Assembly: GCA_021613535.1 (NCBI GenBank)
Contig: CP075494.1
Coordinates: 2,728,001-2,792,000 of the forward strand
Source of the DNA: Adineta vaga
Taxonomy: Eukaryota; Animalia; Rotifera
Direction: 5' to 3'
Length of the DNA: 64,000 nt
Shown piece after piece: positions 3,926 through 62,696 of this stretch. Within the stretch, counting starts at the first letter, position 1. Every line of letters starts with the position of its first letter. The notes beneath the pieces are model-generated. The model was not told the origin of the DNA. It saw only the letters and a program-made list of their open reading frames with translations, and did no database searches. The translations under genes and the position numbers were made by a program.

Positions 3926-4273
3926 AGTCAGTCTATTATATGTAGAAAAAATTTGATTATTCATATTTTAGGAGAACACACATCAAGGACGCATCTTACG
4001 TTAAATTTCAATGAATTGTTGCTTTTTCTTTCAGATAAAAATGATTACCAAAATGAATAAAGTACCCGGTAGGCTGCAAATCTCTCTCTATATATACAAG
4101 TAAAGCACAGAATAGAACAATATAAAAACACATTCATTTCACAACTGTGGTGAAATTATTTATCTCTCTCGCTCAAGGTGACGATGCTTTTTGACGGACG
4201 AGGAATGTGAGTGTGGGCCCTTATCAACCGCCTATAAAACACCTGTGACAGGACTTCAATCAATCATTGATAT

Positions 4274-4336
4274 TGGGTGAGAGTGTGAGTGAGGGTGGAT
4301 GTACTGAGGCTATGCTCTTAACCCACACCCTCAAGA
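4274..4336. repeat. Telomere-motif palindromic short element, copy 1
   Basis: TGGGTGAGAGTGTGAGTGAGGGTGG ... ACCCACACCCTCAAGA; right half matches the 15842-15894 copy at 30/33 nt. Confidence 0.7.
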
Positions 4337-6226: not shown

Positions 6227-8032
6227 ATGGCTGAGAACATCGCAGAATGCGACGTGACACAACAACTTTTGGACATGTTTTACGAGATTAGAACGACACT
6301 GAGAGAGAACGAAATCCAAATTCCCCAAAATTTTCCTATCATCGAAATCGATACCAATCTAAGTTGCGAACTCAATTGTTTGGGGTGCACGCAATTTGAA
6401 GACGGCATGGTTCGTTGCATTCAAATGCTTCTCAAAAAACCCGGAACCGATGTGTTTTACTCCAAAGAAGCTCTGATTGCAACGCTTCTTCACGAATTTG
6501 CACATTGCATTACTCCTCCAACGATCGAAGACCATCATTCGAAACTCTTTTACTCCAACTTCGAGAAAATTCTCAGGTAAGATTTGACAGTATTTTCGGC
6601 CTATTCCACTGAATCTCACAATGGAACTGTACTGTTGAACAAAATGGACAAACATTCACTGAGAAGCTCACGAATTTAAAATATGACGTGCTGATGGAGT
6701 GCCTGGATAGAGATCCTCTTTCATAGGGCTTGAACAACATCGTGTTTTATCCTTATAACAGTGGAGAAAACCTTTCCTAATTCAACTTTATATTTAAATT
6801 TCCTGGATCTTGAAATTCAAGGATCTCTGACCAGGCACTCCATAAAATGTGATATTTTAGATTCATGAGTTTCTCAGTCAATGTGATCATTTGCACTTGA
6901 CCCGGTCGTCCATCTCGCTCAACAGTACAGACCGTTCCATTTCTGGACAAGTTTTTCCTAACAAGCTGATTTAGGATATTCATATGAAAAGTGCTATGGT
7001 GACTGTTTTGTTTAGAAAGGCTTGCTTTTTCAACTCTACTATGATTCGCGTTGATTAATTCCTTACAACCGGTTTAATTTAGCAGAGTGACGAACCACAT
7101 TTTTCGACTTAGATGCATTGTGACTTACGAAGCATCTACAGTTTGTGTCGCTCAAATGAAACATGCATCTCGAAAGACAGCGAGTAACTCACGGTCTTTC
7201 TAATTTATATATATATATATTGTTTGGATTTTTAAGTTATATTCACGAAAAACTGATAGTGACAAACGATAGGGCCTTCACGAATAAAATGTTACGACTA
7301 TTTAGGGTTTTTTCAGCAAAGTGTAAAATCATTTCGCACAATATTTGGAATTAGCTGCCAAAATCTTTCACAATATGGTGTCCCAAAGGTTCTCAATTGT
7401 TTCTGAAAATAATGAGGACGAATACGGAGACATGGAAAAATTTTGAAAACTAGACTAGAAACTATCCTACTACATTTAACTGCAAAACATGCATACCGAA
7501 AACACTACTGTGGGACTCAAGGGGTTGAATAATGGGACAATAAAATTGAAAATGATAGCTTTTTTTTATCGAAAGGAGAGTATTACGTATTGGAAATCTT
7601 ATGGAATAGTTCTATTTTCTCATCTTCGATCATCACGACGATAAATACCTTTCACGTTTGCTTTCTAGAGTCGCCGAGCTGAAAGAAATCTTTATTCTGC
7701 CTACAAAAGCAAACAAATTCACTTATCACAATCTTCGTAGATTCGATGCCGTTGATTTAGGTGTTGCTCCTCCAAGTTCTTGTGGCTATTCACCCCTGTA
7801 TAATCCATCCAAGACGAATTTTGATTCGCTTAGAATTGTCGTCATTGGACCAAATCACAAACAAAAATTAATTACTTTGTCTCATGATGAGAAAACTCTT
7901 CCGAGTCTCTCTGAGTTGATCAAACAGAAATTTCAGCTTAAACCGAAGACAATTATTCTTCCTGGAGGAGAAAAACTCACAAATGAAATTCTTCAAACGC
8001 TACCAATCGAATTAACTCTTCACTTCTCTTAA
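6227..8032 (+). CDS. WLM (Wss1-like)/SprT-like zinc metalloprotease with possible C-terminal ubiquitin-like fold; exons 6227-6576 and 7669-8032
   Basis: HExxH motif ATLLHEFAHC followed by DHHSKLFY (third His ligand). The splice AG|gtaaga...ttctag|A joins ORF 6221 and ORF 7658 in frame (ILR-VAELKE). Confidence 0.7.
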
Positions 8033-8127: not shown

Positions 8128-8187
8128 TTGAGAGTTAGGATGTGGGTGAATGTGGGTGAGAAAAGAAAGAACACCCACACTCTCGAA
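8128..8187. repeat. Telomere-motif palindromic short element, copy 2
   Basis: TTGAGAG..TGTGGGTGAATGTGGGTG ... CACCCACACTCTCGAA. Confidence 0.65.
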
Positions 8188-14465: not shown

Positions 14466-15841
14466 TGTCTAAAGAAAAGGAAATTTGTCAGTAAAGAATG
14501 TTTTACATCTTAAATATTAAAATAAATTCTTTAATATATTTACTTAATATTTTATTGATGATGATGAAACATAGAAAAATTGTAGATTTTAATAACATTT
14601 TTCATTGATCATTTTTTAACATTAGAAATTTGGAATTTTTTTCTTTATGACGTTTATTATTTGAAATCCTTTTCTTCTTATTTATCTACAATTCTACGAT
14701 ATAATTCCGTGTAATCTAGTGACGAACATGATCAATTTATTTGTTCACGTATTTTTTTGGATAAAACGTTAAAATAATCGATTCATGTCACAGACTATCA
14801 ATTACAAATAATATTTGAATTTATTATTTATTAAAATATATTTATTTTGTTTTTTTGTCATATTTCTTTTTATCTCTAAACAGGTCATCATTTTTACTTA
14901 CAGTATATAGTAGTCAAAATATCTTGCACAAAATGAAACCTTTTTGCATGATCATTTTCTTTTCTGTACATTTACATTCAATCATGAGGCTAACAATTGA
15001 TTTAAAAGATTATCATATAAAAGTATTATACTACTGTAATCAACAGAGAAACGGCGGATTCCCTGGATCCCCGGATCCCTCGGAGTACGATGAGAATCCG
15101 AAAAATCTCGGGAGTACCATGTCAATCCGAAGAGTACAGTGGAAATCCCGGGAATAGCATAAGAATCCCAAAAATACAAAAAAAATTCTAAGCATTTTTC
15201 AAAACAATTAAGTTAATATAACGAAGATATAAGTCTTCAACATACAAGATAAAAATGCCATACGAAATTTCAATAAAACTTTCACAGTTGCGCATAATTG
15301 CGATTAAAAAATCGCAGTTGCGACGAAATAATCGCATTTTCCCACAATCTTGCTTTCCATTATTCCGCTAATAATTGATGAATAAACCGCCAAAATAAGT
15401 GGAAAGTATGTTACATTCTGTGATATTTATTGAACATTTACAAACAGACAAAAAATTGTGCAACAAAAACAATTATTAGTAAACGGACTAAATGTACAAA
15501 TCCTGTTGAATGACAGGAAGGAAGCGATTTTTAGCGATTGTGACCGCTCTTACTCAGACATAACTAACACTCACCCACCCACCAATCACCAATTGACGGC
15601 AAGCACTTGTCACCCATCGACAACAGTCACGCGTCCATTAACCACCGAAAACACCTACCGATGACTCATCAACACCATTCACCCACTCTTCATCCATCGC
15701 GAATAACCACCAGATACTTATTACTTGACAAAATAGCATCTAGAACGTCATAAATCAGAAAAACGATATTTCAAGGTGGGAACTGATGAATGTCCAATAA
15801 AACACATTTTTACTTTGTTTAAGGGTCTCACCGATTGTATA

Positions 15842-19251: not shown

Positions 19252-19463
19252 AAAACCACTATATAGAAGGACATCTATTGAAAATTCTATCTATATATAA
19301 CGAATGGAAAGAAAATATGGACGATGAATTCAAATTTGGTTCACTTCTGACGATCAAGAAATATCAAATTGGTATTGAAAAATGAAAGAAATGAAAAGAT
19401 TAGATAATAATAAAAGACAAAAATTATCTTGTAGAATAAGTTTTTTTCTTTTAAAAAAATAAT

Positions 19464-19503
19464 TGGGTGTGGGTGATAGTTGTATGCGACACCCTCATTA
19501 CTC
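19464..19503. repeat. Telomere-motif palindromic short element, degenerate copy
   Basis: TGGGTGTGGGTG...ACACCCTCA. Confidence 0.5.
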
Positions 19504-24193: not shown

Positions 24194-25801
24194 TCACCCC
24201 AACCGGTTCGATAGCATATTCTTCATTATAGCTTGTACTTGGTGATAAATATGACGCATGCATTCTGGAATTAATTTATCGGATTTATGGAACAGCAGAC
24301 CTCGCATAGCATCGTCAAAGGGAGCTTGAATGTCTGTTGTATCGACATGATTAAGCAGCAATTGGGAATCTATTTCCGTACAAAATTTATCCACTGTTCG
24401 AGCGCGATCAAGCCAAGTAGACTCTCTAAGCACTTTCTCTTTTGCTCTTTCTGCAAAACGCTCAGCAAGATGTTTGTTTTCTAACAAGCGTTTTACTTGT
24501 TTAGCAATATCTTCTGGCTGAAGTGGATCTGCGTAAAGAACATGCACGTTGTCTTTTAAAATATCGCAAGCTCCTGCTCTCTGCGACATTACAATAGGAA
24601 TATGAGTAGCGGCTGCCTCTTGTATTGCGAGTCCAAATGGTTCAAGATGCGCGGCATGAAGATAAATATCTGAGACATTTAGCCATGCGTTGATCATCTT
24701 CTGGGTACCATGACCTAGAAAAAAGATTCTATCGTCAAACCCATGTTGACGCGCGTAATCAAATGATTGTTGGTAGACTGCTTTTTCTTCAGTTGTTCGA
24801 GGCGGAATATTGCCACCTATATAGACATATATAGCTTGAGGAATGTCTCGAATTAGGTGTCTCATCGACTTAACGGCTTCGATAATGCCCTTGGCAAAGA
24901 CGAAACGGCCAAATCCAAGCACAATTTTCCCATTTTGAATAATCTGTTGATGACGCTTTCCAATGATACCGATATGATCCTGAATGAGGTTTATTCTTTT
25001 CAAGTATTTTTCTTCAACGGTATAATTAAATGAATGAAACCTATTTTGATCGAAGCCACCTGGGATTATCTGAATTCTATCTTTCGCATAATGATATTTA
25101 TCACACAACATGATGGCATGGACATGACTAACTGGTATGATACCGTTGAGTCTCTTCATGGCTGTCAGTTCGCATTGAAAGCGACATGTTAAGTTGGAAG
25201 CTTCAATGGCTTGGCGATATACTTTACTTAGATGTATGTCTTTATTTGTCATATTGCTCAGCCTTTCTTCTGCTTTAATCTTTGTTAGCAGACAATCAGC
25301 TTTCTCCAGGGCAAGCGAATGAGTGATGCCAAACGTCGTACGATAACGACCATCATGTTGTAACATCATTTCCTTCACTACAACCGCCATAAACATGCCA
25401 TCTGCATAATGCCCAATAATATAGTCATAATCATTATCTTTAATTATGTCGAATGCTCGTGCCAAATATTCACAGTAGTAAGGATAGAAATGTTCTTTCT
25501 CGATTTTTCCATCCGCTAATGTTGGCACATGAATAATACGAACACTCGAACAGTCGGACATTATTTCAATCATTATCTGATGAGGCATTTCGAAATCGAT
25601 GTTGTTATAATTTCGTGCATAAATATCGACACGATGACCTAGTTGGCCAAGTGCTCGAGAGATTTCGACTGCATAAATAACTTGACCACCGTTTTCTGCA
25701 GTCGAACCTTGACGACGAACGTACAAGTAGTCCTTAAGAAGAAGTGTTCCTTGTGGGCAGAAAAATGCATAGTTCTTTGATTTAGTGGCATGTTTTTCCA
25801 T
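24194..25801 (-). CDS. GT4 (GT-B) glycosyltransferase, sucrose-phosphate synthase/sucrose synthase-like; HGT candidate
   Basis: Intronless 535 aa; ENGGQVIYAVEISRAL, IIGHYADG, THSLALEK, GRFVFAKG and EPFGLAIQEAAA motifs; visibly more GC-rich than the flanks. Confidence 0.85.
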   Translation of the reverse strand: MEKHATKSKNYAFFCPQGTLLLKDYLYVRRQGSTAENGGQVIYAVEISRALGQLGHRVDIYARNYNNIDFEMPHQIMIEIMSDCSSVRIIHVPTLADGKIEKEHFYPYYCEYLARAFDIIKDNDYDYIIGHYADGMFMAVVVKEMMLQHDGRYRTTFGITHSLALEKADCLLTKIKAEERLSNMTNKDIHLSKVYRQAIEASNLTCRFQCELTAMKRLNGIIPVSHVHAIMLCDKYHYAKDRIQIIPGGFDQNRFHSFNYTVEEKYLKRINLIQDHIGIIGKRHQQIIQNGKIVLGFGRFVFAKGIIEAVKSMRHLIRDIPQAIYVYIGGNIPPRTTEEKAVYQQSFDYARQHGFDDRIFFLGHGTQKMINAWLNVSDIYLHAAHLEPFGLAIQEAAATHIPIVMSQRAGACDILKDNVHVLYADPLQPEDIAKQVKRLLENKHLAERFAERAKEKVLRESTWLDRARTVDKFCTEIDSQLLLNHVDTTDIQAPFDDAMRGLLFHKSDKLIPECMRHIYHQVQAIMKNMLSNRLG

Positions 25802-46081: not shown

Positions 46082-49000
46082 TCAGTGTGAATTCAATGGT
46101 ACAACTTGATTTGTTCTACGACGATAACTAACATATTGACGTACTTTCCAATAAATCTTCAAACCATACCAAACAAATAATTTCAATCCAACAGTTAAAC
46201 CACCATATAAACCAAGAAATATTGTTATCATATATAAGATACTATTTCTTGTTATATAACTATATTCACATGAGACTGGCGAACAAGATAAATAATAATT
46301 CGAATAATTACTCGAATTTTGCCATGTTTCAATGAACAATTCATCAATCAATTCACCAATTGTTACAGATGATATTGGATTAAAACGACTTGATGCAGAT
46401 CGATTAAGAACATTTGGAAAATTAGTTATATAAAAGAAATCAGCTAATTGTGTTAAACATGTCGAATTAAAAAGACATTCAAGTGTTGATTGACGAAGAC
46501 CATCAATAGGTAAACAACCAAAAACGATGCCTACAAATATATAATAACATAAATGTATATAGATCAATTCCATTGGATATTACCTGATATTTGAATTGTT
46601 CGATTATAACTTGTCAATAAAGATCTAAAACATTGTGAGGGAGATGTTGTACAGAAACAAGATTGTCCACTTTCATTAAATATCACAGGAAATGATCTTA
46701 GTACAAAATTCGTTTGTACATCAGATGCAAAAGATTGCCAATTTAAATTAAATCTATGTTGTAGTTGATTTGCATGAAACATATCGATGATATAATGATG
46801 TGTCCATTGAAATTTAGCCAATGTTTGAACAATGAAATTCTCAATAATTGAAGTAACTTGACGTTCAAATGAATCACGTGTCAATGTTTTCAGAGTGATG
46901 AGTTGTTTTGTTGAAAATACTATAATATTTTGTTCAATCATATTCTTTGTAAGTATACAAAATGATGATAATATACGAAATAAACTACTTAAGATTTTTC
47001 TATCATAATTCAAGACATATTCTATTGATTCTTCCATTCCCCAAAGTGATGTAATAAAATCTAATGAAAGAAAATCACTTGAACAAATTTGATGATAAGT
47101 TAATGGTTGAATTGAAACAAATGCTGAATATGAGATGGCAATGTTTGAACATCGACATGTTAATGTTAATGAATATTTCGCTTGTAATTCTTCAAATGTT
47201 GATAAATTTGGTGAAGATATTGTTAGTGAATTGATTCGAGTATTAAGATTAAGAAAAATAAAAAGAATTCCAATTGAAAATAGAAATAAAAGAATATAAA
47301 ATCGAGTTGCAATACGTTGTTGTTTAATTAATAAAATTTCATCATTTGTTTGTATTCGATGATACAAATTCATTTGTTGAAAAGTATTTCGACATTGAAT
47401 GAGAAAAGTTGCCAATCTTCGTCTATTATTTTCACTGTCTTCAATTTGTTCATTTGATGTACAATAATAATGAAAGATTCGTCGAATAGATTTAACAAAA
47501 AGAGGAACTAATATTCGAAGTGCAACAGATAATCCACCAATAATTCCAGCTATGGTTGTAATAATATAAGATATACTAAAACGTTCTTCATGAATATAAA
47601 CACATTCTTTAGGTAAACATTTTTCGAAATAATTTTGAAAATTTATTGAATAAATCCATTCTTCAACAAATAAATGAGAAATGATTTCATCTAATCTTGT
47701 CGATGGTGTAAAACGACTTTTAATCATTGGATTCAAAGATGTTACATTGGCTGCACGTGGATCGATGGTAACCCCAGACATTCCTAATGAAAAACCATCA
47801 ATTAACATTTGAACACAAGATGAATTGTAAAAACATGTTAATGAAGAGACGAAAAGCGCATCGACAGGTGAACAACTTGTAAACCAATCCGGTACAATTG
47901 CTTCATATGTACTTTCATTGCCTGAACAACTTCCTAAGCAAAAAAATCCTATAGTAGTTCTACACAACTCATTGATACCACATGAACAATTATTTTCATA
48001 AATACGTCGTATCGTAAAGAATATTTGTTTGGTAGTATTAGTAGCAAATTGTGTCACAAAATGATCAATATTTGTCGGGTGCGCCAATTGATTTACTCGA
48101 ATTGAAGTTCGAATGATTTGAAATAAATCATAAAAAGAAGCGACTGTCTAAGAAAAAAAATCAAGTACAACTTTCTCCATATCTGCTGTTTAAATTGGTC
48201 AATAATCGACGATATTTGTATAAAAAATGTGTCACTAGATAAAAGACATATTTTATTAAGTATACGAAATAATGCTATACCTGTGATACCAAAATCAATT
48301 AGTAAGAAAGATCCGACAAGATTTGAATTATACAACAACCATGCATCATCTTTAATAAAATCACTTGAACATATTTGATGTAAAGTTGCATTTATATCAA
48401 TAATTGAAGAATATTTTATTGAAATTTGTGAACATGGACAAGTCAATGTTGATGAATATTGTTCAGATAATTGCTTATAAATGTCAAATGTTGGATTGTT
48501 TATGGTTATTGATCGAATTTGTGTTGAAATTGATGAATAAAAGATTAAAAGAATTAAAAATAAAATATAGAAACGTGTTGAATAACGTCCATCTTGAATA
48601 TTACTAAATAGTGGAAACATATTGTATGTTTGTATTTGTTGACGAGTAGTTTTATAAATCGTTTGCATATGATTTTTTACACCTATGAAATTGAAGAAAT
48701 ACTTATGAATAAAATAATGAAATTTTACTTTTATTTCTTTGAATATTATTCATTTGATTTCTATGAAAAATGATTTTATAAATTCGTCGTATTAATTGAA
48801 TGATATATGGTGTTAACATAAATAAAACGATTTTCAATCCACCAAAGAAACTAATCATAGTAACAAGTATGTATACTAAATTAAATGATTGATCATAGAA
48901 ATATGTACACATTTTTGGAGAACATATTTCATTCCATGATTCAATGAATAAATTATTTAAAATATTATTTATAATTGTCTTTGATGAATATTGAGAAGAT

Positions 49001-49551
49001 TTTAATGGTGAAATAAAAGAAAATTCTTGAAGAGAATTAAGACATGATTGATTATAAAAACATTCAAATGTTGAATACATCAATGATTTATATGGAAAAC
49101 AGCCAATTCTTATACCTGGTAACATAAATATCACATTTGAATCATTATCAGTCGTACTAAACAATGTACCACCATTGATTCCTATTCGTCCTGTTTTATT
49201 ATAAATAAAAGCAGGATATGTACATGTATCATCTTTTCTACAATAACAATAACTTGATGCATTTCCATAGAGAGATACGCGAGCTCTCGAAGTACCCGAA
49301 ATTAATTGCATAAATAAATTACAACGTAATCCGGAAAGAATTTCATTATAAAAAATGTTAAACCAAATGAAATCATTGATATGTTTATTATTAATTATTG
49401 TATTTTGTTGAAATTGATTAACAAGTGTTGACATTTGAATTTGAAAATTTTCATAAGATAAAACTTGAGTTGAGATTAAATAATGTGAAGAAAATTCTTG
49501 TACTATATCAATGATTTTTTCTTTCATCATTCGACAAAATATTTGAAGAAG
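46082..49551 (-). pseudogene. Rotifer-expanded multi-repeat membrane protein, frameshifted and 5'-truncated
   Basis: Repeated modules TRFYILL..CPCSQISI..HQICSSDF..GC.P.D.L..S.L.CF.NSSC..LFIE.W..C.P..C.Y..GGL; several frame breaks; coding sequence starts abruptly at a repeat element at 49552. Confidence 0.7.
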
Positions 49552-49614
49552 TTGAGAGCGTGAGTGTGAGTGAGAGTGTGATTCTTATTCTTTTACGCAC
49601 ACCCACACCCTCAA
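49552..49614. repeat. Telomere-motif palindromic short element at a gene-truncation point
   Basis: TTGAGAGCGTGAGTGTGAGTGAGAGTGTG ... CACACCCACACCCTCAA. Confidence 0.75.
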
Positions 49615-50127
49615 AAAAAAGATTCAATTTCTAATACATATTGAACTTATTCTTTTGTTGATATATGACCTGTATTATACAGCTGATTGATAACCATTTA
49701 TTTTATGGAAAAACAATGCCTGTCATTTGAGGAGTTACTGCCTTTCTCATAATAAGTATTTAAAAAAAATTATGAATATGCATCTATAACTTTATAGATA
49801 ATTAAACTATAAAAACACGAAGTCAATATAAGTAACATGTAAAAAAAAAGATGTTACATTTATGATAAGAATAAAGTCATCATTTTGAGAGAGAAAAATA
49901 AATTTCACATTGCCACTACTACATTTACAACGAGCGAAATAGTACTTATCTTTGCTTTATCATAGACTTTTATTCGACTATATATACACGAAATTTTAAT
50001 TGAAACGAGTACACAAGAGAAATGTATCATAAGGTAAATTTTTTTTTGATGCATTAATAATTTTCTAATTATATATTAGCTCTTATTTTCTATTATTCAT
50101 CACAATTACGAATAGCGAGAATACTTT

Positions 50128-50419: not shown

Positions 50420-50687
50420 TTATCGTAGTGCTACCTATGGGCCATCGTGTATATGAAAATCAATCAGACAAATCGCCTTCTATGTTCTGTTCCTTGTTTT
50501 TATTGTGTTTTGCGTGCATAATCGACAACCTTATTATCGAAAATGGACGATTAAAATCACATCATTTACAATCTTAACTATCCCATATTTATTTAAGACA
50601 TATTGTCTTTTCTATAAACAGTATAATATATGTAGTTTCAGAATTATTACTTCATTACTAATTATATTATATACTGTCAGAAAAATC

Positions 50688-53600
50688 ATGGATAAAGTTA
50701 TCGCACGTGCAACGAACTTAATTAATGATTCCATTAATGAAGTATTGGAATCGCGGTCAACTTCACTTTACCATCATAGATTGGTCAATACTCGTAATCT
50801 TCTTAATCGACTACATCAATCGGATTCCCAAAAAAATGATTGGACTCGGTTATTCTATCGACAACTGAAACGATTGATGGATTACAACAACTCAGTACCC
50901 CTCGATTTTTGGATTGAACTGCACAATGAAATTCTCTATGTATTAAATGAACGAAACAGTGAACAATGTACGGTTAGTACTTGGAGCAGTTTTCTTAAAA
51001 GAATGAATTTCGAAGAAAAACTAGAACAACGTCAATTACAATTTCAGCATATTACACAAGAACGAAAGAGTTTAAGTGAGTTATTTTATGAACATAAAGC
51101 GTTTTTCGAAGAATATCTTCACAAATGTATTTCTCTTCATTCGAAATTGCAAGTGCAAGGTCTCTTTGAAAATAGTGATGATCTTGTCTGTAGAGTTTAC
51201 GGACTAACAGAGATTTCACTCACTTTTGACAATCGAAAGCATCTTAAGAAGAAATTAAACTGTATTGAGATACCAATCGATTGTTCCAATAGATCATTGA
51301 GTAATTTGTATTTTGAGTTTTCCACAAACAATAATTCGTCTATGAGAGACAAAAACAACTCCATCAGCTTTTTACCGTCCAAAAAAATAGATATGAAAAT
51401 GAGTGGTAAATCTGAGATAATTGACAATGTACTGAAATTCAAACGATGGATTGTCGTTCTTGGTGAACCAGGTTGTGGAAAAACTACTCTTGTTCGATGG
51501 ATGACTCGTGTGTTTGCTGAAGCAGCTCATCATAGTCATGAAAAAGTAGATTTAGAAGGTTATTGTCGCCTTCCAGTTCGCATTCCTATTTTGATTCGAA
51601 TCGGCGAACTTGCGGCATGGTTTGCACAACATAAAACAAAATCATTAATGGATTATATTGGCGAGCACACGTGGTTTTCTGAACGCTACTGTCATGATGA
51701 AAGTGGAAATGTATTGAAAGAGTTAATCAATCATGGTCATGCGTTGATCCTTCTTGATGGTCTTGATGAGATTTCTGAATTTGGGCTACGAAGCAAGATT
51801 GTTGAACTTGTTGAAGAATTTATTGAAAAATATGTCTATTCATCTGATTGCATCTCAGCATTCGACGATAAAATGTTCGACACTGATTGCTCGTGGGATG
51901 ATCGAAAAGTTGTTGAAGCGCAGCCACCGAACATATATGGTGGCAATCAGATAGTTGTCACGAGCCGTACTGTTGGTTACCAGTCTCATCCACTCAATGG
52001 TCCGTTTATTGAGCATTATTCATTATTATTGATGAATCATAAAGAGGCAAACGAATTTATAAAAATATGGATGAAACAAGTTGACAAAAGTGTACGTTAT
52101 ATTTTACTTAAAGAAGGAATTAAACTTAACGAAGAAAAGATGAAAACTTCATTGAAGACACAAAACTATGGCGAAGAAACAGTGTTTGAAAACAGTACAG
52201 AATTATTAAAAGCAAATCCTTCTTTGTTATCGTTGATCTGCACATTCATTTTTCAATCATCAGTTGAATTGCATCTAAAATCGCGAGTCGAAATCTACAA
52301 TTATGCTGTTCAATCAGCATTACGCGCTTGGAAAAGTACAGAATCGAGCATCTTAGAAAGTGTTGTGAAGAATTTTCTAATTGATCTTGCCATTTACCTT
52401 CATTTAAATTCGCCCTCTGGACTTATAGATGCATTTGATATGAAACATCTATGCTGTTTAGCATTAAAGTTACAAAAAGTCTCGAATGATCGTACAATAT
52501 TGAATGAATACGCGGAAAAGTTAATATATTTGCTGGAATCCAACGTCGCCATTGTCGCCGAGAGAGGTTTACAAGTATTTGGGTTTTTACATTTATCATT
52601 TCAAGAGTATTTTGTAGCACAGGGTCTTGTTAGAGGTTCTTCTATCAATGAAGTTGCAAAACGCATTCTTTCATTTACTATTAATTCTCGTTTTCGTGAA
52701 TCACTTCTTTTGGCTTTTAGTTGGATTAGTTGGAAATGGCCATTTGATAAGTATAATCGATTTTGCAATTTACTTTTTACTCCTACTGAAAATCATAGTA
52801 TTCCATTTGGAATACTTTTATTCTTTGATGCTATCAATGATATCCACAGATTGCCTGCCAAGTCGGTCATTTTTATCGCACTGAATAATTTACTAAATCA
52901 TCCATCTAATGAAATGAGAGAGACATACTTGATATCGAATTTGTCCAAATTGCCTGAAGATATTATAATAGAATGGATGCATTTACATTTAAAAGATGAG
53001 AAATGTCTTCTCAAATTTTGTCAATCTTTCCCATTACAACTTGAGAGATCCTATGATAAAAATAAAACTGTTCGAAAACCAATACCAACTATTATTTATC
53101 GACAATTGTGGTCATCTCATCATATGAGTTCATCAACTGAGCTCCTTATCGATCAAATCTTGCGAAACCTACTGATTTCAGATGATGTATCTAATCAAAT
53201 TTTTGACAACGATTTTCTGTCACACAACATCTGTGTATGCAACATTAATCCTTTGATACTGTCTATCATTATTGCCGTATGTGGTGGAATATATTTTAAA
53301 TCGGAAAAAAATATGACTAAAATTGACTTTTCACCGAAACATATGCATCGTGAATCTTCTATCTTAGCTCCTATTGTAGAATATTTTGATAATAATGAAG
53401 AATCTCATATAATCAAAGTTCAAAAACTGATAAAAAAATACGAAAGCGTTCTTCGAAACTCTTCACCATCGGATACTTCAGTTGATATCACTGATACATT
53501 TATTGCCTTGATCTGTTTGCAAGGACTTTCGTATCCATTGATTTATCAATATTATGCTGAATATCAAGCACTGCCACTCGCACTCAAAAGATTAAAACGG

Positions 53601-56600
53601 ACATGGTTCTATTTGAAGGAACACTACAAAATCGATCGATATGGGGGCAATGGACTACGCAGATCCTTCATGATATCTGAAATTGAATCAATCAAGAAGA
53701 TTTTCTTTTCACAGTCTGATCAATCTGAAGAACTACACATACCGTTTTTAATAGTATTTGAAGCTGCCTTGAAAAAACTTGGCATGTGGAATGTGGTAAA
53801 CAGCCTAATATATGATTTTTCTTGTAACAACAAAGTCGGTCGATATTTTCAACGCCATCCAGAATTCATCCATTTTATCGCCAACCAAAATTTAGATCAA
53901 ACCAGTCAAGATATCCATTCAATGGAAATGTTACAAAAGGAACCATCCTTCTTGGTATCTTTTCTACCACGATCTCTTCAACAATTATACTACTACACGA
54001 CTATCTCTCCTGTTAATAAAACAGATTCCTTACCATTCGTTGTATTCTTATCACAATATTTAATACACTTGAAAGACATCAATGACTATGATTTGAAGAC
54101 TTGTTTTGTTTTGTCATTATTGCAACCATTGTTCAAAGAATACATGTTGGAAAATTATGCTTTTGTGCTCTTCTGGAAAAAATATTATGATGTCATTGAA
54201 TATTTCGATAAAGATGATAGAACATTTTTTGAAACGATGAAAGATCGTAATTTGTTAGATTCATTTTTTATCAATCAACCAAAAGATTGGAAAGCACTCA
54301 TCAGCGTGGAACGCCAACGTATTTGTGAAGCGATAGCCATAGTGCAAAATCAAAAGAAAGATTTGCAGCTTTTTGCTGCGTCAATTTCTCTCGCTAGACT
54401 TTTTCAAGCTCAATATTCCTGTCAATCAATGAAAAACATTTGTCACAACTCTGCTGAAAGTGAAGAAGTACACTTTGCAGTAACAAATATAGTCAATCCA
54501 GTTTTACGGATCATTGCATTGAGTATAATCTTCGATATGAACGATCCGTTAATCTTTGATGAAGAACAAAGGAATAAGTTACAATGGGAAATGATTAGTT
54601 TATTACAATCCTTGTTACCACGTCTCTCGCTATTAAAAGGAACTCTTTTATTTGTTCGATGTCATACAGTACGGCACGTTTTTCAATTATCATTTCAATA
54701 CATGGCTAAAATAATTGGAGGAAAATTGAATCAAACATTAATAGCCAAACAAAATCAAGGTCAAGAAGCAGCATACATTGCGTTACAAAAGCTGAATAAT
54801 TCAGATCTTTCAGATCATTTATCAAAATTCGCCAAACAAAAAGAGAATTTATCTGATCTCCTTCAATTTAACTCAACAATATTTTATCAATATTTTATCA
54901 GAGCAACGTCATTTAATTCATCAAATCCTATTTTTCTTTCATCTATGTATCTAACGGAATTGATTTTCGATGCTCAGATCCTAAATATGTATACTATTAC
55001 TGCACAGAAGACAAACATTTGGCTGTTGACAGAATTAAGACAGTTGTGGAATGTCTCGCCGAACGATGAAAAGATAATGACTTATAAAGCGGCATTATGG
55101 ATAACGAACTATCTACATATGTCAAACAAACAAAAAATTCATGAGATTATTGAAGATATGTCTTCTTGTTCAATGATTGAAAGAAAAGCTCTCTCAATCA
55201 TTGAGAAATGGCTTGATTATCGAACACACAAAGATTTGAATTTTTTTGCACATTATGCCGCATTACAACTAGTTGCAGAAGGTTCAAATACTCCAGATTT
55301 AATCCGTATTATTGAGGAAATATTTTCTGTTGATAGTACGTCTCGTTTGAGACATGTTGTAAAACGTTTATTCATATCACAATATGCTGATTCAACGGCA
55401 GTTCGTCAAATCTTAATCACATTACATCGAAATGTTCGTTATTCTTTAAATATTTCTGTCCAGATTGATTGCAAAGAAACGTTTAAATTGATTTTGAATT
55501 TGGAACTTGAAAGAATCACATCGAATGTACGTCAAATACCTGTAATCTCAAGTAGACCATTTTTATTAATGATTGATGGTTGCACAGCAGATTTACAACT
55601 CTATCTTGCAGAACATCTTCGTACATTGACCACTAAACGAATTGATATTGAAAATTCTATTAAAGAAGAATATGTTGCTGTTGTTGTCAAATGGTTTATT
55701 CAGAGTTCGATACAGTATGATAGAACAAAAGACTTTTCAATAGAACTATACAAGTATATTTTCGTTTTACTTCATGATCAACGATTTCCTCGAGTTCAAA
55801 AGGCAATTCTCAATGCTTTTAATTCAACCTTCATCAAATGTCAATCGGAAAAGAATGTTTTTATGCAAGATGATATATCTACCAACTTGGAGAAAGTGAT
55901 TTGTTTATGGGATACATATTCAGAAGATATTGTAGCTATTTGTTTAATAGCTTATGGGAATTCTCTACGAATGTTACAACGCTTTGAAATAAATCAAAAT
56001 GTCTCTGATGAGATAAAGAACGTACTTACTAATCTTGCCAAGACATCATGTTCAGAAATTATTTCTATCCAAGCTAATTTATGTTTAATTTTCTCGCAAT
56101 ACCCGAAAGTAAGGTGGCATACAATATCGAACTGGTTCAAAAAAGAGTCAGATATGACATCTGATAAGGAATACAAGACACTGTTACAATTGACGTTATA
56201 CCCTACGAATATTCTCCCACTCTTCACATCGAAAGCTGAAAATGAAATTGTCGAATATATAAAAGTATATTCTGCTAAGTTCATTGACACGTTTGTTACT
56301 GATTTATATCATTATCTATGCAACAAAAATAAGGGAAACTATCTTGCTGTTCCTGCACCTAAATATATCGACATTGCAGCGAATTTAAGTGAAACAAAGT
56401 CCAAGGAATTTTGTTATGCTATTCGGAAAAGTTCTTTTGGTGAAGATAAGTTCAAAAATGAACTCTATATTTATTTTAAGAATAATCCAAACAATGGATA
56501 CCACTTAATTGAGCTTTATATAGTTTTTGGTACGATTACAATCGAACTTCTTGATATGTTGGAATGGGTTGTAGATTATCAGGATAAAACGTTTGTTCTC

Positions 56601-56999
56601 AGTTATCATCACCTCAAACAAGTATCTGATCGAGATGTTATTGACAAGTTGTTCCAACTAATAGATTTGACAACGTCTAATAAATATTTGAAATATTTTC
56701 TAGATGTATTGGAACGTCTCGCTGAGATTGGCGCTGTATCTTTATTAGAACTGCATCAAAGGATCTCACTCAGCAATAATGTATCCTATGGTGATGAGTA
56801 TAACCGGTTTAACGGTAAAGACATTTTCAAAGTATTATTAAATCTTAGTTGCTTTAAAAAAGATTTTTCATGGAAGTTTGAGAAAAACTTTCTCACTGAG
56901 AGTTATATTGACGAAGAATTTGAGAACGAAGTCCATAAACTTGATACAAATTCTTCTCGATTTCTCAGAAGAAATTTTTTTCTCAACAGTTTCAAATAG
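50688..56999 (+). CDS. Large NACHT (STAND) NTPase with helical C-terminal region
   Basis: Uninterrupted 6.3-kb ORF; Walker A GEPGCGKT, Walker B LILLDGLDE, VTSR, NPSLLSLIC, FLHLSFQEYF; start taken at MDKVIAR. Confidence 0.9.
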   Translation: MDKVIARATNLINDSINEVLESRSTSLYHHRLVNTRNLLNRLHQSDSQKNDWTRLFYRQLKRLMDYNNSVPLDFWIELHNEILYVLNERNSEQCTVSTWSSFLKRMNFEEKLEQRQLQFQHITQERKSLSELFYEHKAFFEEYLHKCISLHSKLQVQGLFENSDDLVCRVYGLTEISLTFDNRKHLKKKLNCIEIPIDCSNRSLSNLYFEFSTNNNSSMRDKNNSISFLPSKKIDMKMSGKSEIIDNVLKFKRWIVVLGEPGCGKTTLVRWMTRVFAEAAHHSHEKVDLEGYCRLPVRIPILIRIGELAAWFAQHKTKSLMDYIGEHTWFSERYCHDESGNVLKELINHGHALILLDGLDEISEFGLRSKIVELVEEFIEKYVYSSDCISAFDDKMFDTDCSWDDRKVVEAQPPNIYGGNQIVVTSRTVGYQSHPLNGPFIEHYSLLLMNHKEANEFIKIWMKQVDKSVRYILLKEGIKLNEEKMKTSLKTQNYGEETVFENSTELLKANPSLLSLICTFIFQSSVELHLKSRVEIYNYAVQSALRAWKSTESSILESVVKNFLIDLAIYLHLNSPSGLIDAFDMKHLCCLALKLQKVSNDRTILNEYAEKLIYLLESNVAIVAERGLQVFGFLHLSFQEYFVAQGLVRGSSINEVAKRILSFTINSRFRESLLLAFSWISWKWPFDKYNRFCNLLFTPTENHSIPFGILLFFDAINDIHRLPAKSVIFIALNNLLNHPSNEMRETYLISNLSKLPEDIIIEWMHLHLKDEKCLLKFCQSFPLQLERSYDKNKTVRKPIPTIIYRQLWSSHHMSSSTELLIDQILRNLLISDDVSNQIFDNDFLSHNICVCNINPLILSIIIAVCGGIYFKSEKNMTKIDFSPKHMHRESSILAPIVEYFDNNEESHIIKVQKLIKKYESVLRNSSPSDTSVDITDTFIALICLQGLSYPLIYQYYAEYQALPLALKRLKRTWFYLKEHYKIDRYGGNGLRRSFMISEIESIKKIFFSQSDQSEELHIPFLIVFEAALKKLGMWNVVNSLIYDFSCNNKVGRYFQRHPEFIHFIANQNLDQTSQDIHSMEMLQKEPSFLVSFLPRSLQQLYYYTTISPVNKTDSLPFVVFLSQYLIHLKDINDYDLKTCFVLSLLQPLFKEYMLENYAFVLFWKKYYDVIEYFDKDDRTFFETMKDRNLLDSFFINQPKDWKALISVERQRICEAIAIVQNQKKDLQLFAASISLARLFQAQYSCQSMKNICHNSAESEEVHFAVTNIVNPVLRIIALSIIFDMNDPLIFDEEQRNKLQWEMISLLQSLLPRLSLLKGTLLFVRCHTVRHVFQLSFQYMAKIIGGKLNQTLIAKQNQGQEAAYIALQKLNNSDLSDHLSKFAKQKENLSDLLQFNSTIFYQYFIRATSFNSSNPIFLSSMYLTELIFDAQILNMYTITAQKTNIWLLTELRQLWNVSPNDEKIMTYKAALWITNYLHMSNKQKIHEIIEDMSSCSMIERKALSIIEKWLDYRTHKDLNFFAHYAALQLVAEGSNTPDLIRIIEEIFSVDSTSRLRHVVKRLFISQYADSTAVRQILITLHRNVRYSLNISVQIDCKETFKLILNLELERITSNVRQIPVISSRPFLLMIDGCTADLQLYLAEHLRTLTTKRIDIENSIKEEYVAVVVKWFIQSSIQYDRTKDFSIELYKYIFVLLHDQRFPRVQKAILNAFNSTFIKCQSEKNVFMQDDISTNLEKVICLWDTYSEDIVAICLIAYGNSLRMLQRFEINQNVSDEIKNVLTNLAKTSCSEIISIQANLCLIFSQYPKVRWHTISNWFKKESDMTSDKEYKTLLQLTLYPTNILPLFTSKAENEIVEYIKVYSAKFIDTFVTDLYHYLCNKNKGNYLAVPAPKYIDIAANLSETKSKEFCYAIRKSSFGEDKFKNELYIYFKNNPNNGYHLIELYIVFGTITIELLDMLEWVVDYQDKTFVLSYHHLKQVSDRDVIDKLFQLIDLTTSNKYLKYFLDVLERLAEIGAVSLLELHQRISLSNNVSYGDEYNRFNGKDIFKVLLNLSCFKKDFSWKFEKNFLTESYIDEEFENEVHKLDTNSSRFLRRNFFLNSFK

Positions 57000-57554
57000 T
57001 TTGAGCTAAGCAGATTGTTTTAGTTTTCTATCAGATTCTTGTGCCCATACATATTTTATTTTGACAACGGACGTTATTATGATCAAGTGTAGTTATCATT
57101 TCGAATTTGTTTGTATAGAATATTTTCAAACTATGTTTTTTTGCTTATTTTCTTTTCTGAAAAAAATTTAATATCACTACTGGTAGAAACTATTTCAAAT
57201 ATAATTTAAGATGTGGAGTTTTTGTAAAGATTCTCAATATAGTATGCGCTGGAAAGAGTACTCAGAATGAAAGTATTCTGCATTCCATAAGTAAAAGTTT
57301 AGAATTTTTTAAAATATTCGTTTTTCTACAAAATAGTTACGAAACCCGAATACTCAAAACTGTTATGCAATACATCAAAAGCAAAAAGAGGGAAGTTGAA
57401 ATAAAAGTAAGTAAATGGATTTTATGTGAAATATATCATTATATCCACGCTTACGAACTCTTTTAGTTTAACGTGTTATTATGCATATACCAATAAATAA
57501 GAAAATAATATCAGGTAAACCATGATGAAAAGTATAGTATAGAATAAAGTAGAT

Positions 57555-57578
57555 TTTGAGGGTGTGAGTGTAAGTGTC
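57555..57578 (+). repeat. Degenerate telomeric repeats at the retroelement 3' junction
   Basis: TTTGAGGGTGTGAGTGTAAGTGTC = TGAGGG TGTGAG TGTAAG TGT, with 6-nt periodicity. Confidence 0.65.
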
Positions 57579-58430
57579 TAGCTACCATGACCGGTTTCGT
57601 CTTGCGCTCCGAAAACTCGTCAGATGGCCTATTAATTTGAAATTGATCTAATTCTGATCTCTGTTAAGTTTAAATCTAACTGAATTGAAGTTGATGACGC
57701 AATTTTTTAACATCTTGAAGTTATTGTTCGATTGATTCACTGAATTTAAGATAAAGCGATAGCTGTAGACGATTATTTTTTGATAATTGGTGTAATTTTT
57801 TTTTGAAGTGTTTTTCATCTAATACTATAAGATATTAGAAGAAATTGGATTGATGGAATTCTTGAATAGTTTAATCTAGAATTGAAAAGAATTTTCCATT
57901 GAATATAAAACTTTTCATTATATTTGATTTGAAATGATTTATGTAATATAGCCGGATTTAATCTTACAATAGGAAAGATTCAATATTTTGAGAGGAATAA
58001 TAAGATTATTCGGTTTTGGTGTATGAATTTTAAGCTAATGATCAACAGTTTTTTCTTGGATATCAGAAATAACTATTCAATTTTATTTATGTTTTAATGT
58101 TTCGTTTGGGCCGTTTCTGAATGAGTTTCTTTGAAGCATTTAGCTGGTTACGATTATCAGCAATCAACTTGGCTTTCATGGCTGATGTATTCTGACAGAC
58201 GTTTTCATATATTCGATACATATCACGTTTGAATGAACGAAATCGTCTTTCGTGTTTTTAATGAATAAAGAAACGATCACGGAAACGTATAAGACCAGCT
58301 TGTTTTTGATTCATTAGATTTACTGATGTACGTAGTTGGTTTTGAATCAACTGATTCTGGATTGTGAATATCTGCCAATGCTATGCTTCTAGCTACTTGA
58401 GACTGACGAGTTGTTGGCTGTGATCTGGCC
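57579..58430 (-). mobile_element. 5'-truncated Athena/Terminon-like (endonuclease-deficient Penelope-like) retroelement remnant
   Basis: Decayed ORF end QPTTRQSQVA...FFIH*KHERRFRSFKRDMYRIYENVCQNTSAMKAKLIADNRN...LIQKRPK* (58087-58427) resembles C-termini of bdelloid PLE RTs (recalled); followed by a 3' UTR, hammerhead and reverse telomeric repeats. Confidence 0.7.
57584..57628 (-). ncRNA. Minimal type I hammerhead ribozyme
   Basis: Minus strand GCCAT-CTGACGA-GTTTT(CGGAGCGC)AAGAC-GAAA-CCGG-TC-ATGGT: full catalytic core, stems I and II paired, palindromic ACCGGT stem III, GUC cleavage triplet. Confidence 0.88.
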
Positions 58431-59666
58431 TCGTAGCGGCTGTCTCAGAAAATATGGGAATATGTAGGAAAGTAAAAGTATTATCCATATAGGATTTTCT
58501 TCGCCTATATAGGAAATATATAGGACAAGGGTTTCCAGAATAAATAGCTTTTTAAGCTTAAAATCTGACAATCTACAGCAATATTGAAAATTAGTCTCTT
58601 TTCTGCATATATACGGTTAATTGCATTATTTTTTCATAGTTTTATGTAGTCTGCTGTACACAACTAAAACGTCGAGAATTTGCTATTTCGATACAGTTCC
58701 ATAGAGAGTTGATTATTCTACCAAATCAAACTATTTCGATTTTATTTTCTTCGTTCTGTTGTGAAAAATTCAGAGATGCGCGGATACAAATGCAAAAAGT
58801 TCTCACAAACAAACAATATCTTCCTCTTCTTATGTCTCTTCTAGCGTACATTAACATCGAAAATAAAGCATCACCACAAAAAAAACGCACACGATCAAAT
58901 CTCAGGATGAGGATAAGGGCGGAACATCAGCATACACGAAAACAAAAAAAATTAACCTACCCAAAAAATAGGAGTCAGTGGGGGTTTTCCATCACGACGA
59001 GGTACCTGTGACAATTTCTGATGGAAGAGATATATATCCAGATGGAATCATGTCATTCTTTATTTCTTTCTAACATTAATCGCATCTTTTACATACGAAA
59101 ACACAAGCTTATATATGTGCAACCAAAAGAAAGAGAACGAGGGAGTAAATTCATGAGACATAGATAGATGAGAGAAAGAGAACAGCCAAAGAAAATGGAT
59201 AGAACGATATCACCACAGATATCGTCACAGTACCCATGTACTCAAGCCTATGTCCTGAGATGAAATCATCTACTCTCTCACAATGCTTAGAACTATTAGA
59301 ATTCATACTTGTTATCTCAATAAATATACTCGAGTATATCGATACGAATTTCAACAATTCTAAGGATTTGGGGGGGGGGGGGTATATGAGTTCATCAAAC
59401 TTCAAGATATTGTTACATTCGGAGTACATTTTTTTTTCGTACTCACCTAGCCCTCAACTAAACTAACATCAGAACTGGAAAAGATTTTCTGTTTTTTCTC
59501 AACGACAAAAGCACTCTAGAAATTGTATAGAAGTAAAATAAATATATATCGATTGCATCTTTTCGTCCATATTTGTGAAACAAATAATTAGCTATATCAT
59601 CGAAGAAATTTTTGATAAAAAAATACTGACTGACCGAGTAACTTTGTTATTATAATGATCTAATGT

Positions 59667-59996
59667 CCAGATCGACAAATCCGATAGGATCCAACGTTCC
59701 TACAAAATCCTATCGGATTCCTGGTGACGAATCTGTATTGGATTTTGCCAGTAAAATTTCCGTCGGAAGCTGCAAATTTTATGAGCGTTCTTTTTAGCTA
59801 TATTTTATTGCGGTCTTACGGCCACCTGTCGAATCCGTCAAAATCCGTTTTTTGGAAACTCTAGGATCCTATGTTGGATCCGCAACCGACAGAATCCGAA
59901 GTGATTCCGTCCCCAGGAATACGATAGGATATTGTTCGATCATAGGATTCCGATGGAATCCGGCATGGGATCCGAGTATCAGATTGGTCGACATGA
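59667..59996. mobile_element. MITE rich in GGATCC/AATCCG motifs
   Basis: CAGATCGACAAATCCGATAGGATCC ... GGATCCGAGTATCAGATTGGTCGACATG imperfect TIRs. Confidence 0.6.
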
Positions 59997-60360
59997 GTGA
60001 AGAACGAGCTCGTACATTGTCATCATTATCTGTCTAATACACTTAGCGCTGCTGACAATACATATAACGGATGTTGCCCTTCTCAAAGAATATGTAACTT
60101 TCTTTAAAAACAATAATTTTTTTGAAAAATATAGAAAATACAGTCCCACTACGAGGCCAGGTTAAATTGTCGTTAATTCATTTTTTAGTCTGTTTTCATA
60201 GTCTAATTGAACAGACATCTATTCAAAAAGGTCGGATATATTTCTTTTTCTTTTGATCAGCAATAAAGACAATGATCAGGAAACTCGTTTTTTCCTTGTT
60301 GTCATGGACGACATCGAAATAAAAAAGATCGTATTTGTCGATTTGAAATCATATTCTTTT

Positions 60361-60756
60361 ATGGCTTATCAACCAAAACAAACCATAGTCATTTTATTCT
60401 TTTGCATTGCGACTATAAATGCAGAAAATATGCCTTTTATTCGAGGTGCTTATTACAATAAATTAGCGAAAACAATCGTTTTTGATGTTGACTATAAAGG
60501 TGGTTGCGTCGAACATGATTTTCGATTCAAAATGGGTGGTTGTCGTGACGTTGAGCCTTATCAATGCAGTGCTTCAATAATTGATTTGACTTTGAATGAT
60601 TCTTTTGATTTCATCGTTTCTCGTCAAATATCAATCGTTATCAAAGAAATTATAGTTCAGACTATTATAGATATGTTAGTACAAACAATTACTATCTATG
60701 GCAAGGAGCATACAAATGCAAAATTTATACAAAAGAAAAATGTAAATTTTAAGTGA
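60361..60756 (+). CDS. Paralog of the 16145 bacterial-type secreted protein; C-terminus altered by an insertion
   Basis: MAYQPKQTIVILFFCIATINAENMPFIRGAYYN...YKGGCVEHDFRFKMGGC...PYQC aligns colinearly with the 16145 ORF. Confidence 0.7.
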   Translation: MAYQPKQTIVILFFCIATINAENMPFIRGAYYNKLAKTIVFDVDYKGGCVEHDFRFKMGGCRDVEPYQCSASIIDLTLNDSFDFIVSRQISIVIKEIIVQTIIDMLVQTITIYGKEHTNAKFIQKKNVNFK

Positions 60757-61005
60757 AGAATTGAAAGAAACGAATATTATTATCATTATTTCGGACGTTT
60801 CGTCAACTTAGTTGACATCATCAGCACCATCTCCACGACCAACACGTTTATTGATTGTCATTTTAGTTCACTATGAAAGAATATTAATAAGAAAAATTAA
60901 AATTGTAATATTCATTTCTTTCAATTCTTCACTTAAAATTTATATTTTTCTTTTGTCTAAAATTTGTCATTAATTTTATTTTTCTTATTAATTTGCAAAA
61001 TTTAT
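60729..61005. mobile_element. Fold-back insertion with 12-bp target-site duplication
   Basis: Direct repeat TGCAAAATTTAT at 60717-60728 and 60994-61005; ~55-bp inverted repeat 60721-60778 / 60906-60965. Confidence 0.7.
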
Positions 61006-61621
61006 TCTTACATACTAAATATTCTCTTGACATTCTATTAGAAAAGGTAGAAATTTAGTGAATATCTTGAGTTGTAATCTTGTGTGGTATGCAGAATAAA
61101 ATGTTTATTTTGAATTGCGTACTGATGTGGTTTATCCTAATTGTTCACTGAATTCAAATTCATCTTATTGGATTATTGATTGATCTTGTGATAGTATGGG
61201 TACAGATAACAGAATAATATGAATTCTGAATAAGACTCAAACTCACACCCGTAAAAGTCTTCTTCGTAACTTTTATCATTTAATTTCAATTCGATTCAGT
61301 CGTACTAATTAAAACGACGACTTTATATCGATGTATTTCCATAATGTTTTTGTTTGCGATCTAACCATATATCAACCGAAAGATAAAATACAGCGTTGCA
61401 AAGTTAAGAAATTGTGAAAAAATAGATTGTTTACTTAATATGTTTAATTTTGTTTATAATTCTTATATGTATAAACTATTCTTGATAGAATACTTATATG
61501 AGAAATAATACAAAGTATTCGAAGAAAATTACTATTCGTTAAAATTCATCACTTTTGTTTATGTTGCTGTTGCATCAAACAAGAACTTGTTAGCTACGAA
61601 TCTTTATAGGTTTCACTTTTT

Positions 61622-61760
61622 ACTGGTTCTGGTTCGTCATCATTGTACAAACAAATCTTAACTACGTTTCAATATTATAAAATCGGAATCTTGGAGCTCA
61701 CTGAATATCCAACATCAGGTATCATGATATATCATGCTGTTGTTATCGCTGGCTATGTAA
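61622..61760 (+). pseudogene. Papain-family (C1A) cysteine protease fragment
   Basis: TFQYYKIGI...IYHAVVIAGY matches the FQFYKSGI...HAVLxVGY catalytic-His region; bounded by stops. Confidence 0.5.
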
Positions 61761-62696
61761 TATATGTGGCATCGAATCTAGCGCATTTTATATAAGAAGA
61801 CCAGCTTAAATGCCCATTGATCTATTTATCAAATGACTATAATGCGCGTTCCAATTTTTACTATGCTCTGGAATGAATTTTTCTATTTTTTTTAACATGT
61901 TCTTCTCATTTTAGTTCTGTTTTTAAAATTATGTACGAAATAAAAACAATTACGAGGTTCACATATTTGAAGATGTGAGTATTGGTTATGCTTGCACACT
62001 CTCGCAGTCTGATACAGATTAGAAAAACTCATTCATCATCAACGTTTTATGTATCTTAAAGAAAAAGAGCACAATGCAAAGTTGTTTTCCCTTTACACTA
62101 TTGAAATATTTCATATCAGAAAAGTGTAGATAAGAATAGACGGAAGTATAAGAAGAGAACGGCTCACTCGTTTACGAATAAATTTTTCCTAGTGGTTTTG
62201 TCTTTGTATTGTTTTTTTTCACCTACTATCAATGATAAAATTTCCACTTCTTTTATCATAATAAGTTCTTATTATTATATACACTGACTCAAATAAGAAC
62301 AATGTGACTATATTTCATAACTTTCTTTTAGTTGACCATTTTGTTCTATATAAAATACTTTTAAAACATGGAAATGGATGTGCAGAATGCTGGGGCAAAA
62401 ATTGGCGAATTATTAATACTATGGCTGAAACTCCATTTACGTCCTATTGGGAAGGACAAATAAAATGTGCAAAATGTTCACACGCATATAAATTCCATGA
62501 TTTCAAAAATAATTAAACATTTTTTTCCCTTTTGTCTTCTAACTCATTTCGATGTGACGATTTTTAATATTCAAAATGATTATATATTATATTCAAAACT
62601 ATTTTTATTAATAATAAATATACGTGTTTCAATTAAAAAATTTGAAAAAAAAGAGTTACATGATATTTATGGTTGCAAATAAAATTACATGTTTGT

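Follow-up and report, generated by a model that had tools for sequence, protein, structure and literature searches.

How does the 3' end of an Athena/Terminon-type retroelement, carrying a predicted hammerhead ribozyme and a tail of telomere-like repeats, come to lie 2.79 Mb inside a chromosome, and is its intact ribozyme unusual there? The window analyzed is the whole 64,000-nt stretch C5:2,728,001-2,792,000, from chromosome 5 of Adineta vaga, in a genome of six contigs and 100.8 Mb that has the TGTGGG repeat. The element lies 2.786 Mb from the start of C5 and in inverted polarity. As a preliminary description of this DNA had noted, the copy is internal, with open reading frames on both sides:

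50505 to 56999, plus strand: flanking open reading frame of 2164 aa with a weak NACHT match, directed towards the 3' end of the element
60253 to 60756, plus strand: flanking open reading frame of 167 aa with a 70% paralog on contig C3

The locus is probably the fossil 3' end of an Athena/Terminon element, lacking a promoter and lying in the rearranged outer part of chromosome 5, where a break would have been healed, extended and rejoined. Only 0.87 kb of the element survives, in the following parts:

58087 to 58423, minus strand: decayed C-terminus of a Penelope-like (Athena-type) reverse transcriptase (RT), 337 nt, recognized by tblastx to RT loci
57629 to 58086, minus strand: AT-rich 3' untranslated stretch, 458 nt
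57584 to 57628, minus strand: predicted type I hammerhead ribozyme, recognized by core motif and covariation
57578 to 57588, minus strand: 3' arm of stem I with a short linker, 11 nt
57556 to 57577, minus strand: reverse-telomeric tail of three ACACCC-type units, then TCAA

The coding remnant ends with a TAA at 58089-58087, followed by non-coding DNA. The one stop and one frameshift that had been described for it were both located on the minus strand, the former as an in-frame TAA at 58260-58258, at the position of a Tyr codon in its relatives, and the latter between about 58334 and 58305. The broken reading frame was searched as two pieces, with an X at the stop and no spliced model joined. 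The similarity search that had been proposed as a check returned PLE-type RT C-termini (tblastx E 7e-25), the targets being the genome's own RT loci. The piece shares 46-51% identity with the C-terminal exon of the RT genes L002-L004 and L049; these genes carry a Penelope-type RT core, which matches the 563-aa RT of L068 (38%, E 7e-49). The named homologs of L068 are all bdelloid. Some of them have PF00078, and none of 120 homologs is listed with a GIY-YIG family. The reading frames of the relatives end 15-25 aa past the same motif, with no endonuclease, and that of the window ends at 58087 with no GIY-YIG after the RT. Along this chain, from the window piece through L002-L004 and L049 to L068, the remnant would belong to the RTs of the bdelloid endonuclease-deficient PLE clade. 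Its assignment to the endonuclease-deficient Athena type is indirect, made through homologies between sequences. Pfam and PDB searches of the RT pieces gave nothing useful beyond a weak RVT_1 match for L067. The element has no close sister copy, the best DNA match being 79% over 102 nt. Because the copy retains nothing of the element beyond its last 112 RT codons on the 5' side, Athena and Terminon are indistinguishable for this copy. In the Athena family of L002 (positions 1-405), L003 and L004, the interval from RT stop to hammerhead contains an antisense proline-rich open reading frame of 135-158 aa.

The untranslated stretch, previously put at ~460 nt, measures 458 nt (58086-57629). Apart from its last ~30 nt it has no relative among the fetched loci, and it places the hammerhead 0.46 kb from the RT, versus 1.8-2.2 kb in the closest RT loci. 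The complete minimal hammerhead with palindromic stem III of the preliminary description is present in the sequence with all its core nucleotides and its three predicted stems. Stem I would consist of 5 bp (57628-57624 with 57588-57584), and stem II of 5 bp including one G-U (57616-57612 with 57603-57599). The core is formed by CUGACGA (57623-57617) and GAAA (57598-57595), stem III is the palindrome ACCGGU (57595-57590), and the cut is predicted after 57589. The element has the 3'-terminal type I hammerhead with a short palindromic helix III. A hammerhead pattern with the ACCGGU palindrome gave 21 matches in the genome against 0 in the reversed control, and 19 of these, of the same type, were aligned. 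Among the 19 copies, 92.5% of cells were paired, with 27 double-sided changes, a level that 0 of 500 shuffles attained, and all 5 pairs of stem II covary, against only 15-50% pairing in slid controls; relatedness among the copies inflates these figures. A hammerhead search had been named as a check: its pattern part was positive, as described, whereas an Rfam search gave no match at gathering score. Since MFE folding alone was not significant either (z -0.7), the call is founded on the core motif and the covariation across the 19 copies. No tandem hammerhead partner was found in the 64-kb window.

Directly past the hammerhead, 11 nt from the cut site as in sister loci, stand the reverse-telomeric repeats. 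Their linker is of a type identical to that of L013 and L021 and one base different from that of L015. The tail comprises one perfect and two degenerate units (57577-57560) and TCAA (57559-57556), and a tail of the ACCC type followed all 23 Terminon-type hammerheads that were read in the fetched loci. The earlier reading, ACACTT-ACACTC-ACACCC-TCA, holds for the three repeats; its TCA is better taken as the TCAA end common to telomere tracts (22 of 68 in a sample made up of the fetched loci and the window). The G-rich strand of this tail would have been the primer. Taken together, the RT homology, the missing endonuclease, the hammerhead and the ACACCC tail support the proposed identity as an Athena/Terminon 3' end.

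The 5' side of the copy has a different makeup, with the following features:

58424 to 58439, plus strand: left arm of a 16-bp inverted pair
59000 to 59232: dispersed MITE-like repeat within the 1.74-kb segment bounded by the pair
59667 to 59998: another dispersed MITE-like repeat within the same segment, of higher copy number and with inverted ends
60146 to 60165, minus strand: right arm of the inverted pair (60146-60161), with TTAA outside
61235 to 61256, plus strand: short C-rich telomere-like tract, 22 nt, 82%, facing the tail from 3.66 kb

A 5' truncation closed by telomere repeats is typical of these elements, though not universal, and sister elements often have a telomere junction at this point. 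In the window, the truncation of the RT piece adjoins an arm of the inverted pair instead. The 1.74 kb that the pair bounds (58424-60165) may be the remnant of a DNA transposon that removed the original cap, and the missing cap is probably due to a later rearrangement. The 12-nt core of the arm occurs only three times in the genome, the third copy being at C2:724554. No significant protein or DNA match that would continue the RT past this segment was found in 60161-61300. The tract at 61235-61256 is a possible, weak candidate for the partner arm of a junction. Two further inverted structures were observed in the window. At 60719-60966, 73-nt arms (88%) surround a second hammerhead-like core (60824-60794 on the minus strand) that has a perfect stem II of 6 bp, an ACGU palindrome and a stem I of only 2 bp; one arm starts 2 nt past the cut site, the genome holds a few related sites, and the structure resembles a solo Penelope pseudo-LTR. 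At 6650-6885, arms of ~65 nt (83%) enclose no hammerhead core, and a related stretch is found at C4:136331.

The position of the copy was compared with that of hammerheads across the genome. A broader pattern gave 54 matches against 1 in the control; 7 lacking stem II were dropped by eye, 2 were added from the ACCGGU pattern and tandem copies were merged, which left 45 sites. Tails were read where sequence had been fetched, including 14 internal sites, the other sites being placed by coordinates and screened by eye. Fifteen of the 45 sites lie no more than 0.2 Mb from a contig end, 12 of them in telomere polarity. The other 30 are internal, at depths of 0.2-4 Mb; 18 of them share the inverted polarity of the window copy and 12 have telomere polarity. 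No site is deeper than 4 Mb (distances on right arms use lower-bound contig ends, with a total slack of 0.56 Mb). On C5, sites are found at 0.08, 0.20, 1.00, 1.85, 2.17, 2.55, 2.79 and 2.85 Mb. The window copy, inverted and 2.79 Mb in, thus falls in the 0-4 Mb zone to which all 45 sites are confined, and an internal position is normal for this genome. The significance first attached to the internal site is not borne out, given that 30 of the 45 sites are internal and that internalization had already been proposed (PMC6431247).

The history that we favor has four steps. A double-strand break near 57556 would have been seeded with a few telomere repeats, starting TTGAGGG. The ACACCC tail of an Athena RNA, beside the hammerhead, would then have paired with the G-rich overhang, and the RT of the element would have copied the RNA from its 3' end with no need of an endonuclease; this step follows a published model, the anatomy of which is found here. 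Since the copy spans the cut site, the RNA template would have been uncut there. Later, the capped end would have been joined to other DNA and so become internal; its polarity would mean either that the distal 2.8-Mb piece was the one capped or that an inversion came later. Because no telomere tract closes the 5' truncation of the window copy itself, this third step is inferred from sister loci. In the fourth, which is in part directly visible, the segment bounded by the inverted repeats would have replaced the 5' side, and the ORF, tail and ribozyme would have decayed neutrally since. Searches for an empty allele in the read contigs, or a paralogous empty site in the genome, found none, so the original break is not reconstructable.

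The joining step is read from back-to-back telomere junctions, in which a G-rich tract, a short spacer and a C-rich tract follow one another, usually with TCAA at the end. Four occur in the window (~4273-4335, 8134-8185, 19462-19500 and 49556-49615), with spacers of 11-25 nt, against 0 in 12 simulations. Genome-wide, a strict pattern gave 2,045 matches against 16 in the reverse order; the first 100 of the 2,045 represent 52 distinct sites, which puts the number of junctions at around 1,000. In six sister loci (L007, L016, L017, L019, L023 and L035) the truncated element is closed by a junction 30-560 nt upstream of the hammerhead, and in none of the five whose far flank was tested does the element resume beyond it. 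The arm in L019 has its start, TT/GAGGG, at the precise point where the match to L018 breaks off, which indicates that arms are built on broken ends, those of retroelements included. These data support the healing of an end followed by its rejoining, and they explain the mixed polarity. The same reading agrees with the deletion breakpoints of A. vaga, which carry telomere repeats and Athena fragments (PMC13564844), and with the internalization proposed in PMC6431247. Single telomere-like arms were also observed near 15564, 15867, 23880, 30136 and 36594. Four adjacent minus-strand open reading frames at 46082-49530 have no Pfam match; the start codon of the first is 26 nt away from a telomere junction, which may have truncated the gene.

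The best surviving alternative, which we consider unlikely though worth weighing, is that a genuine chromosome tip received the end, which subtelomere growth, ectopic recombination or an inversion then carried inward, no break having occurred at this place. It would account for all 45 sites lying within 4 Mb of an end and for the mostly telomere polarity (12 of 15) of those nearest an end. It also draws on the rearrangement-prone subtelomeres reported with the published chromosome-level assembly of Adineta vaga (PMC8494291), and on the chain build-up with internalization proposed for these elements (PMC6431247). Simple outward growth, however, predicts a single polarity, and the internal sites are mixed, 12 versus 18. 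The tail, moreover, has just three repeats and the TCAA signature of short seeded tracts, with no long array.

It is improbable, more so than inward transport, that the junctions are instead landing pads. On this reading the back-to-back tracts would form a very small mobile element, an Athena RNA would have been primed where one of the existing arms was nicked or broken, and the copy would have been internal from the start. The spacers of the junctions do recur: one 16-nt motif occurs 44 times in the genome (window copy at 4309-4324; control 0), almost always no more than about 3.3 Mb from a contig end, which means that a template underlies some linkers at least. The window tail also ends like a junction arm, with the possible partner at 61235-61256. 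Yet the number of irregular repeats per arm ranges from 2 to about 25, no target duplication can be seen, elements cut by a junction do not resume on its far side, and the arm in L019 is built on the truncated end of a retroelement itself.

The spacers do not appear to be copies of the 3' cleavage product of the hammerhead, a match that would have meant cleavage in vivo: they scored no better than shuffles (11.7 versus 12.3-12.7, in a small sample of 11 spacers and 11 tail types). Our guess is that the linkers come from read-through of the telomerase RNA template; linker and TTGAGGG start may both have been copied from a specific RNA such as telomerase RNA. Returning to healing and rejoining, we suggest tentatively, and as a proposal that could well fail, that they form a routine repair route, in which telomerase caps broken ends, Athena sometimes extends them, and the tips are then joined to each other through a templated linker. 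Should this be true, the window locus would be one example of the route and not evidence for it. No description of the wider junction pattern was found in the literature that could be searched.

The preliminary description had also given weight to an intact ribozyme beside a decayed ORF. Of the single substitutions possible in the 3' ORF piece, 5.1% yield a stop, so that one stop per about 110 codons translates into roughly 20 substitutions, or about 6% decay, a very loose estimate from a single event. At 5-7% decay the 15-nt core would be left untouched about 34-46% of the time. An intact core is therefore expected at the inferred decay, with no selection needed, and the implied significance lacks support; in addition, the copy was noticed owing to its intactness. 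That selection kept the ribozyme while the ORF decayed, for instance for cutting read-through transcripts near the NACHT-like gene, is very improbable. The core nucleotides and all three stems are indeed intact, but neutral decay already predicts as much, stem II has a G-U where 11 of the 19 copies have C-G, the tail is degenerate, and ribozyme and NACHT-like gene are on opposite strands. Minimal hammerheads of this kind, furthermore, depend on dimer formation and show poor cleavage in vitro (PMC4209133), and the window offers no tandem partner. Transcripts had been proposed as a further check, and no RNA run holds the stretch; as only contigs were searched, this is weak evidence of silence. 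Most likely the ribozyme is idle at this locus. The in vivo role of minimal hammerheads is still open (PMC7761336), and this single copy, for which no RNA was found, provides no easier test of it than intact elements do.

That telomere-end sequence was misjoined into the contig during assembly is scarcely conceivable and is refuted for 56201-59062, where one unbranched short-read contig runs from the gene end through the tail, ribozyme and RT piece to the upstream flank, with 0 differences, in each of three DNA runs from different studies (two of which may themselves be the source of the assembly), even if the start of C4, with RT loci near-identical to and oriented like those at the end of C3, indicates that the assembly may have such faults elsewhere. 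The depth of the read contigs across the element is similar to that of its neighbors, and no joint skipping the element appeared in the three runs; a misassembled telomere join, named earlier as what would overturn the locus, was thereby given its chance and failed to do so.

Some observations on the surrounding DNA can be added. The RT and hammerhead loci of C4:1-64000 and C3:20,277,000-20,339,000 are nearly identical and in the same orientation, which is the wrong direction for a left telomere; this likeness is due to a recent duplication or an assembly problem. Outside repeats, 56200-62100 shows 0 allelic differences over 5.9 kb in the three DNA runs, and may be hemizygous or have lost heterozygosity. 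At 24194-25801 a single open reading frame encodes a family 4 glycosyltransferase of 535 aa, possibly acquired horizontally.

The locus is no new system but probably an unremarkable fossil left by a break that was healed and rejoined. Its structure has already been published for Adineta vaga, and about 30 other internal sites exist in the genome. It serves as one data point in a genome-wide pattern of internal ends, in both polarities, which often stop at junctions. This pattern favors healing with later rejoining over simple outward growth of tips, and it bears on the reshuffling of subtelomeres in desiccation-tolerant rotifers. The wider junction pattern is of more interest than the locus, which only illustrates it.

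Among known systems, endonuclease-containing Penelope elements (PMC3846280) and metazoan non-LTR retrozymes (PMC7761336) share related minimal hammerheads and internal sites with the window copy. The former can be set aside, since the C-terminal GIY-YIG and the pseudo-LTR pair are both absent here, as is a target duplication. The latter are built of tandem hammerhead units of 150-300 nt, whereas the window has a single hammerhead downstream of RT coding sequence and no tandem array. The minimal type I hammerheads of Penelope-like elements, reported for rotifers (PMC4209133), are closer, with the conserved core, the small palindromic helix III and predicted action as a dimer; the window copy differs from them in being single, in having no pseudo-LTR pair and in the telomere repeats that come next. 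The neotelomeres of A. vaga (PMC13564844) likewise combine telomere repeats with Athena fragments at internal breaks, but they are recent and come from laboratory lines, while the window copy is old and fixed, with DNA on both sides. The nearest match is with Athena/Terminon elements, for which PMC6431247 and PMC8557442 describe a 3'-terminal hammerhead with ACACCC repeats. Internalized islands have been described for them, and fusion and internalization proposed (PMC6431247). The window copy departs from them in its length of just 0.87 kb, its 5' end with no telomere cap, its inverted position 2.79 Mb in and its lack of a close sister, together with an RT-to-hammerhead distance of 0.46 kb against about 2 kb in the closest relatives. 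It shares with them an RT with no C-terminal GIY-YIG, a 3' hammerhead followed by ACACCC repeats, a 5' truncation and adjacent host genes.
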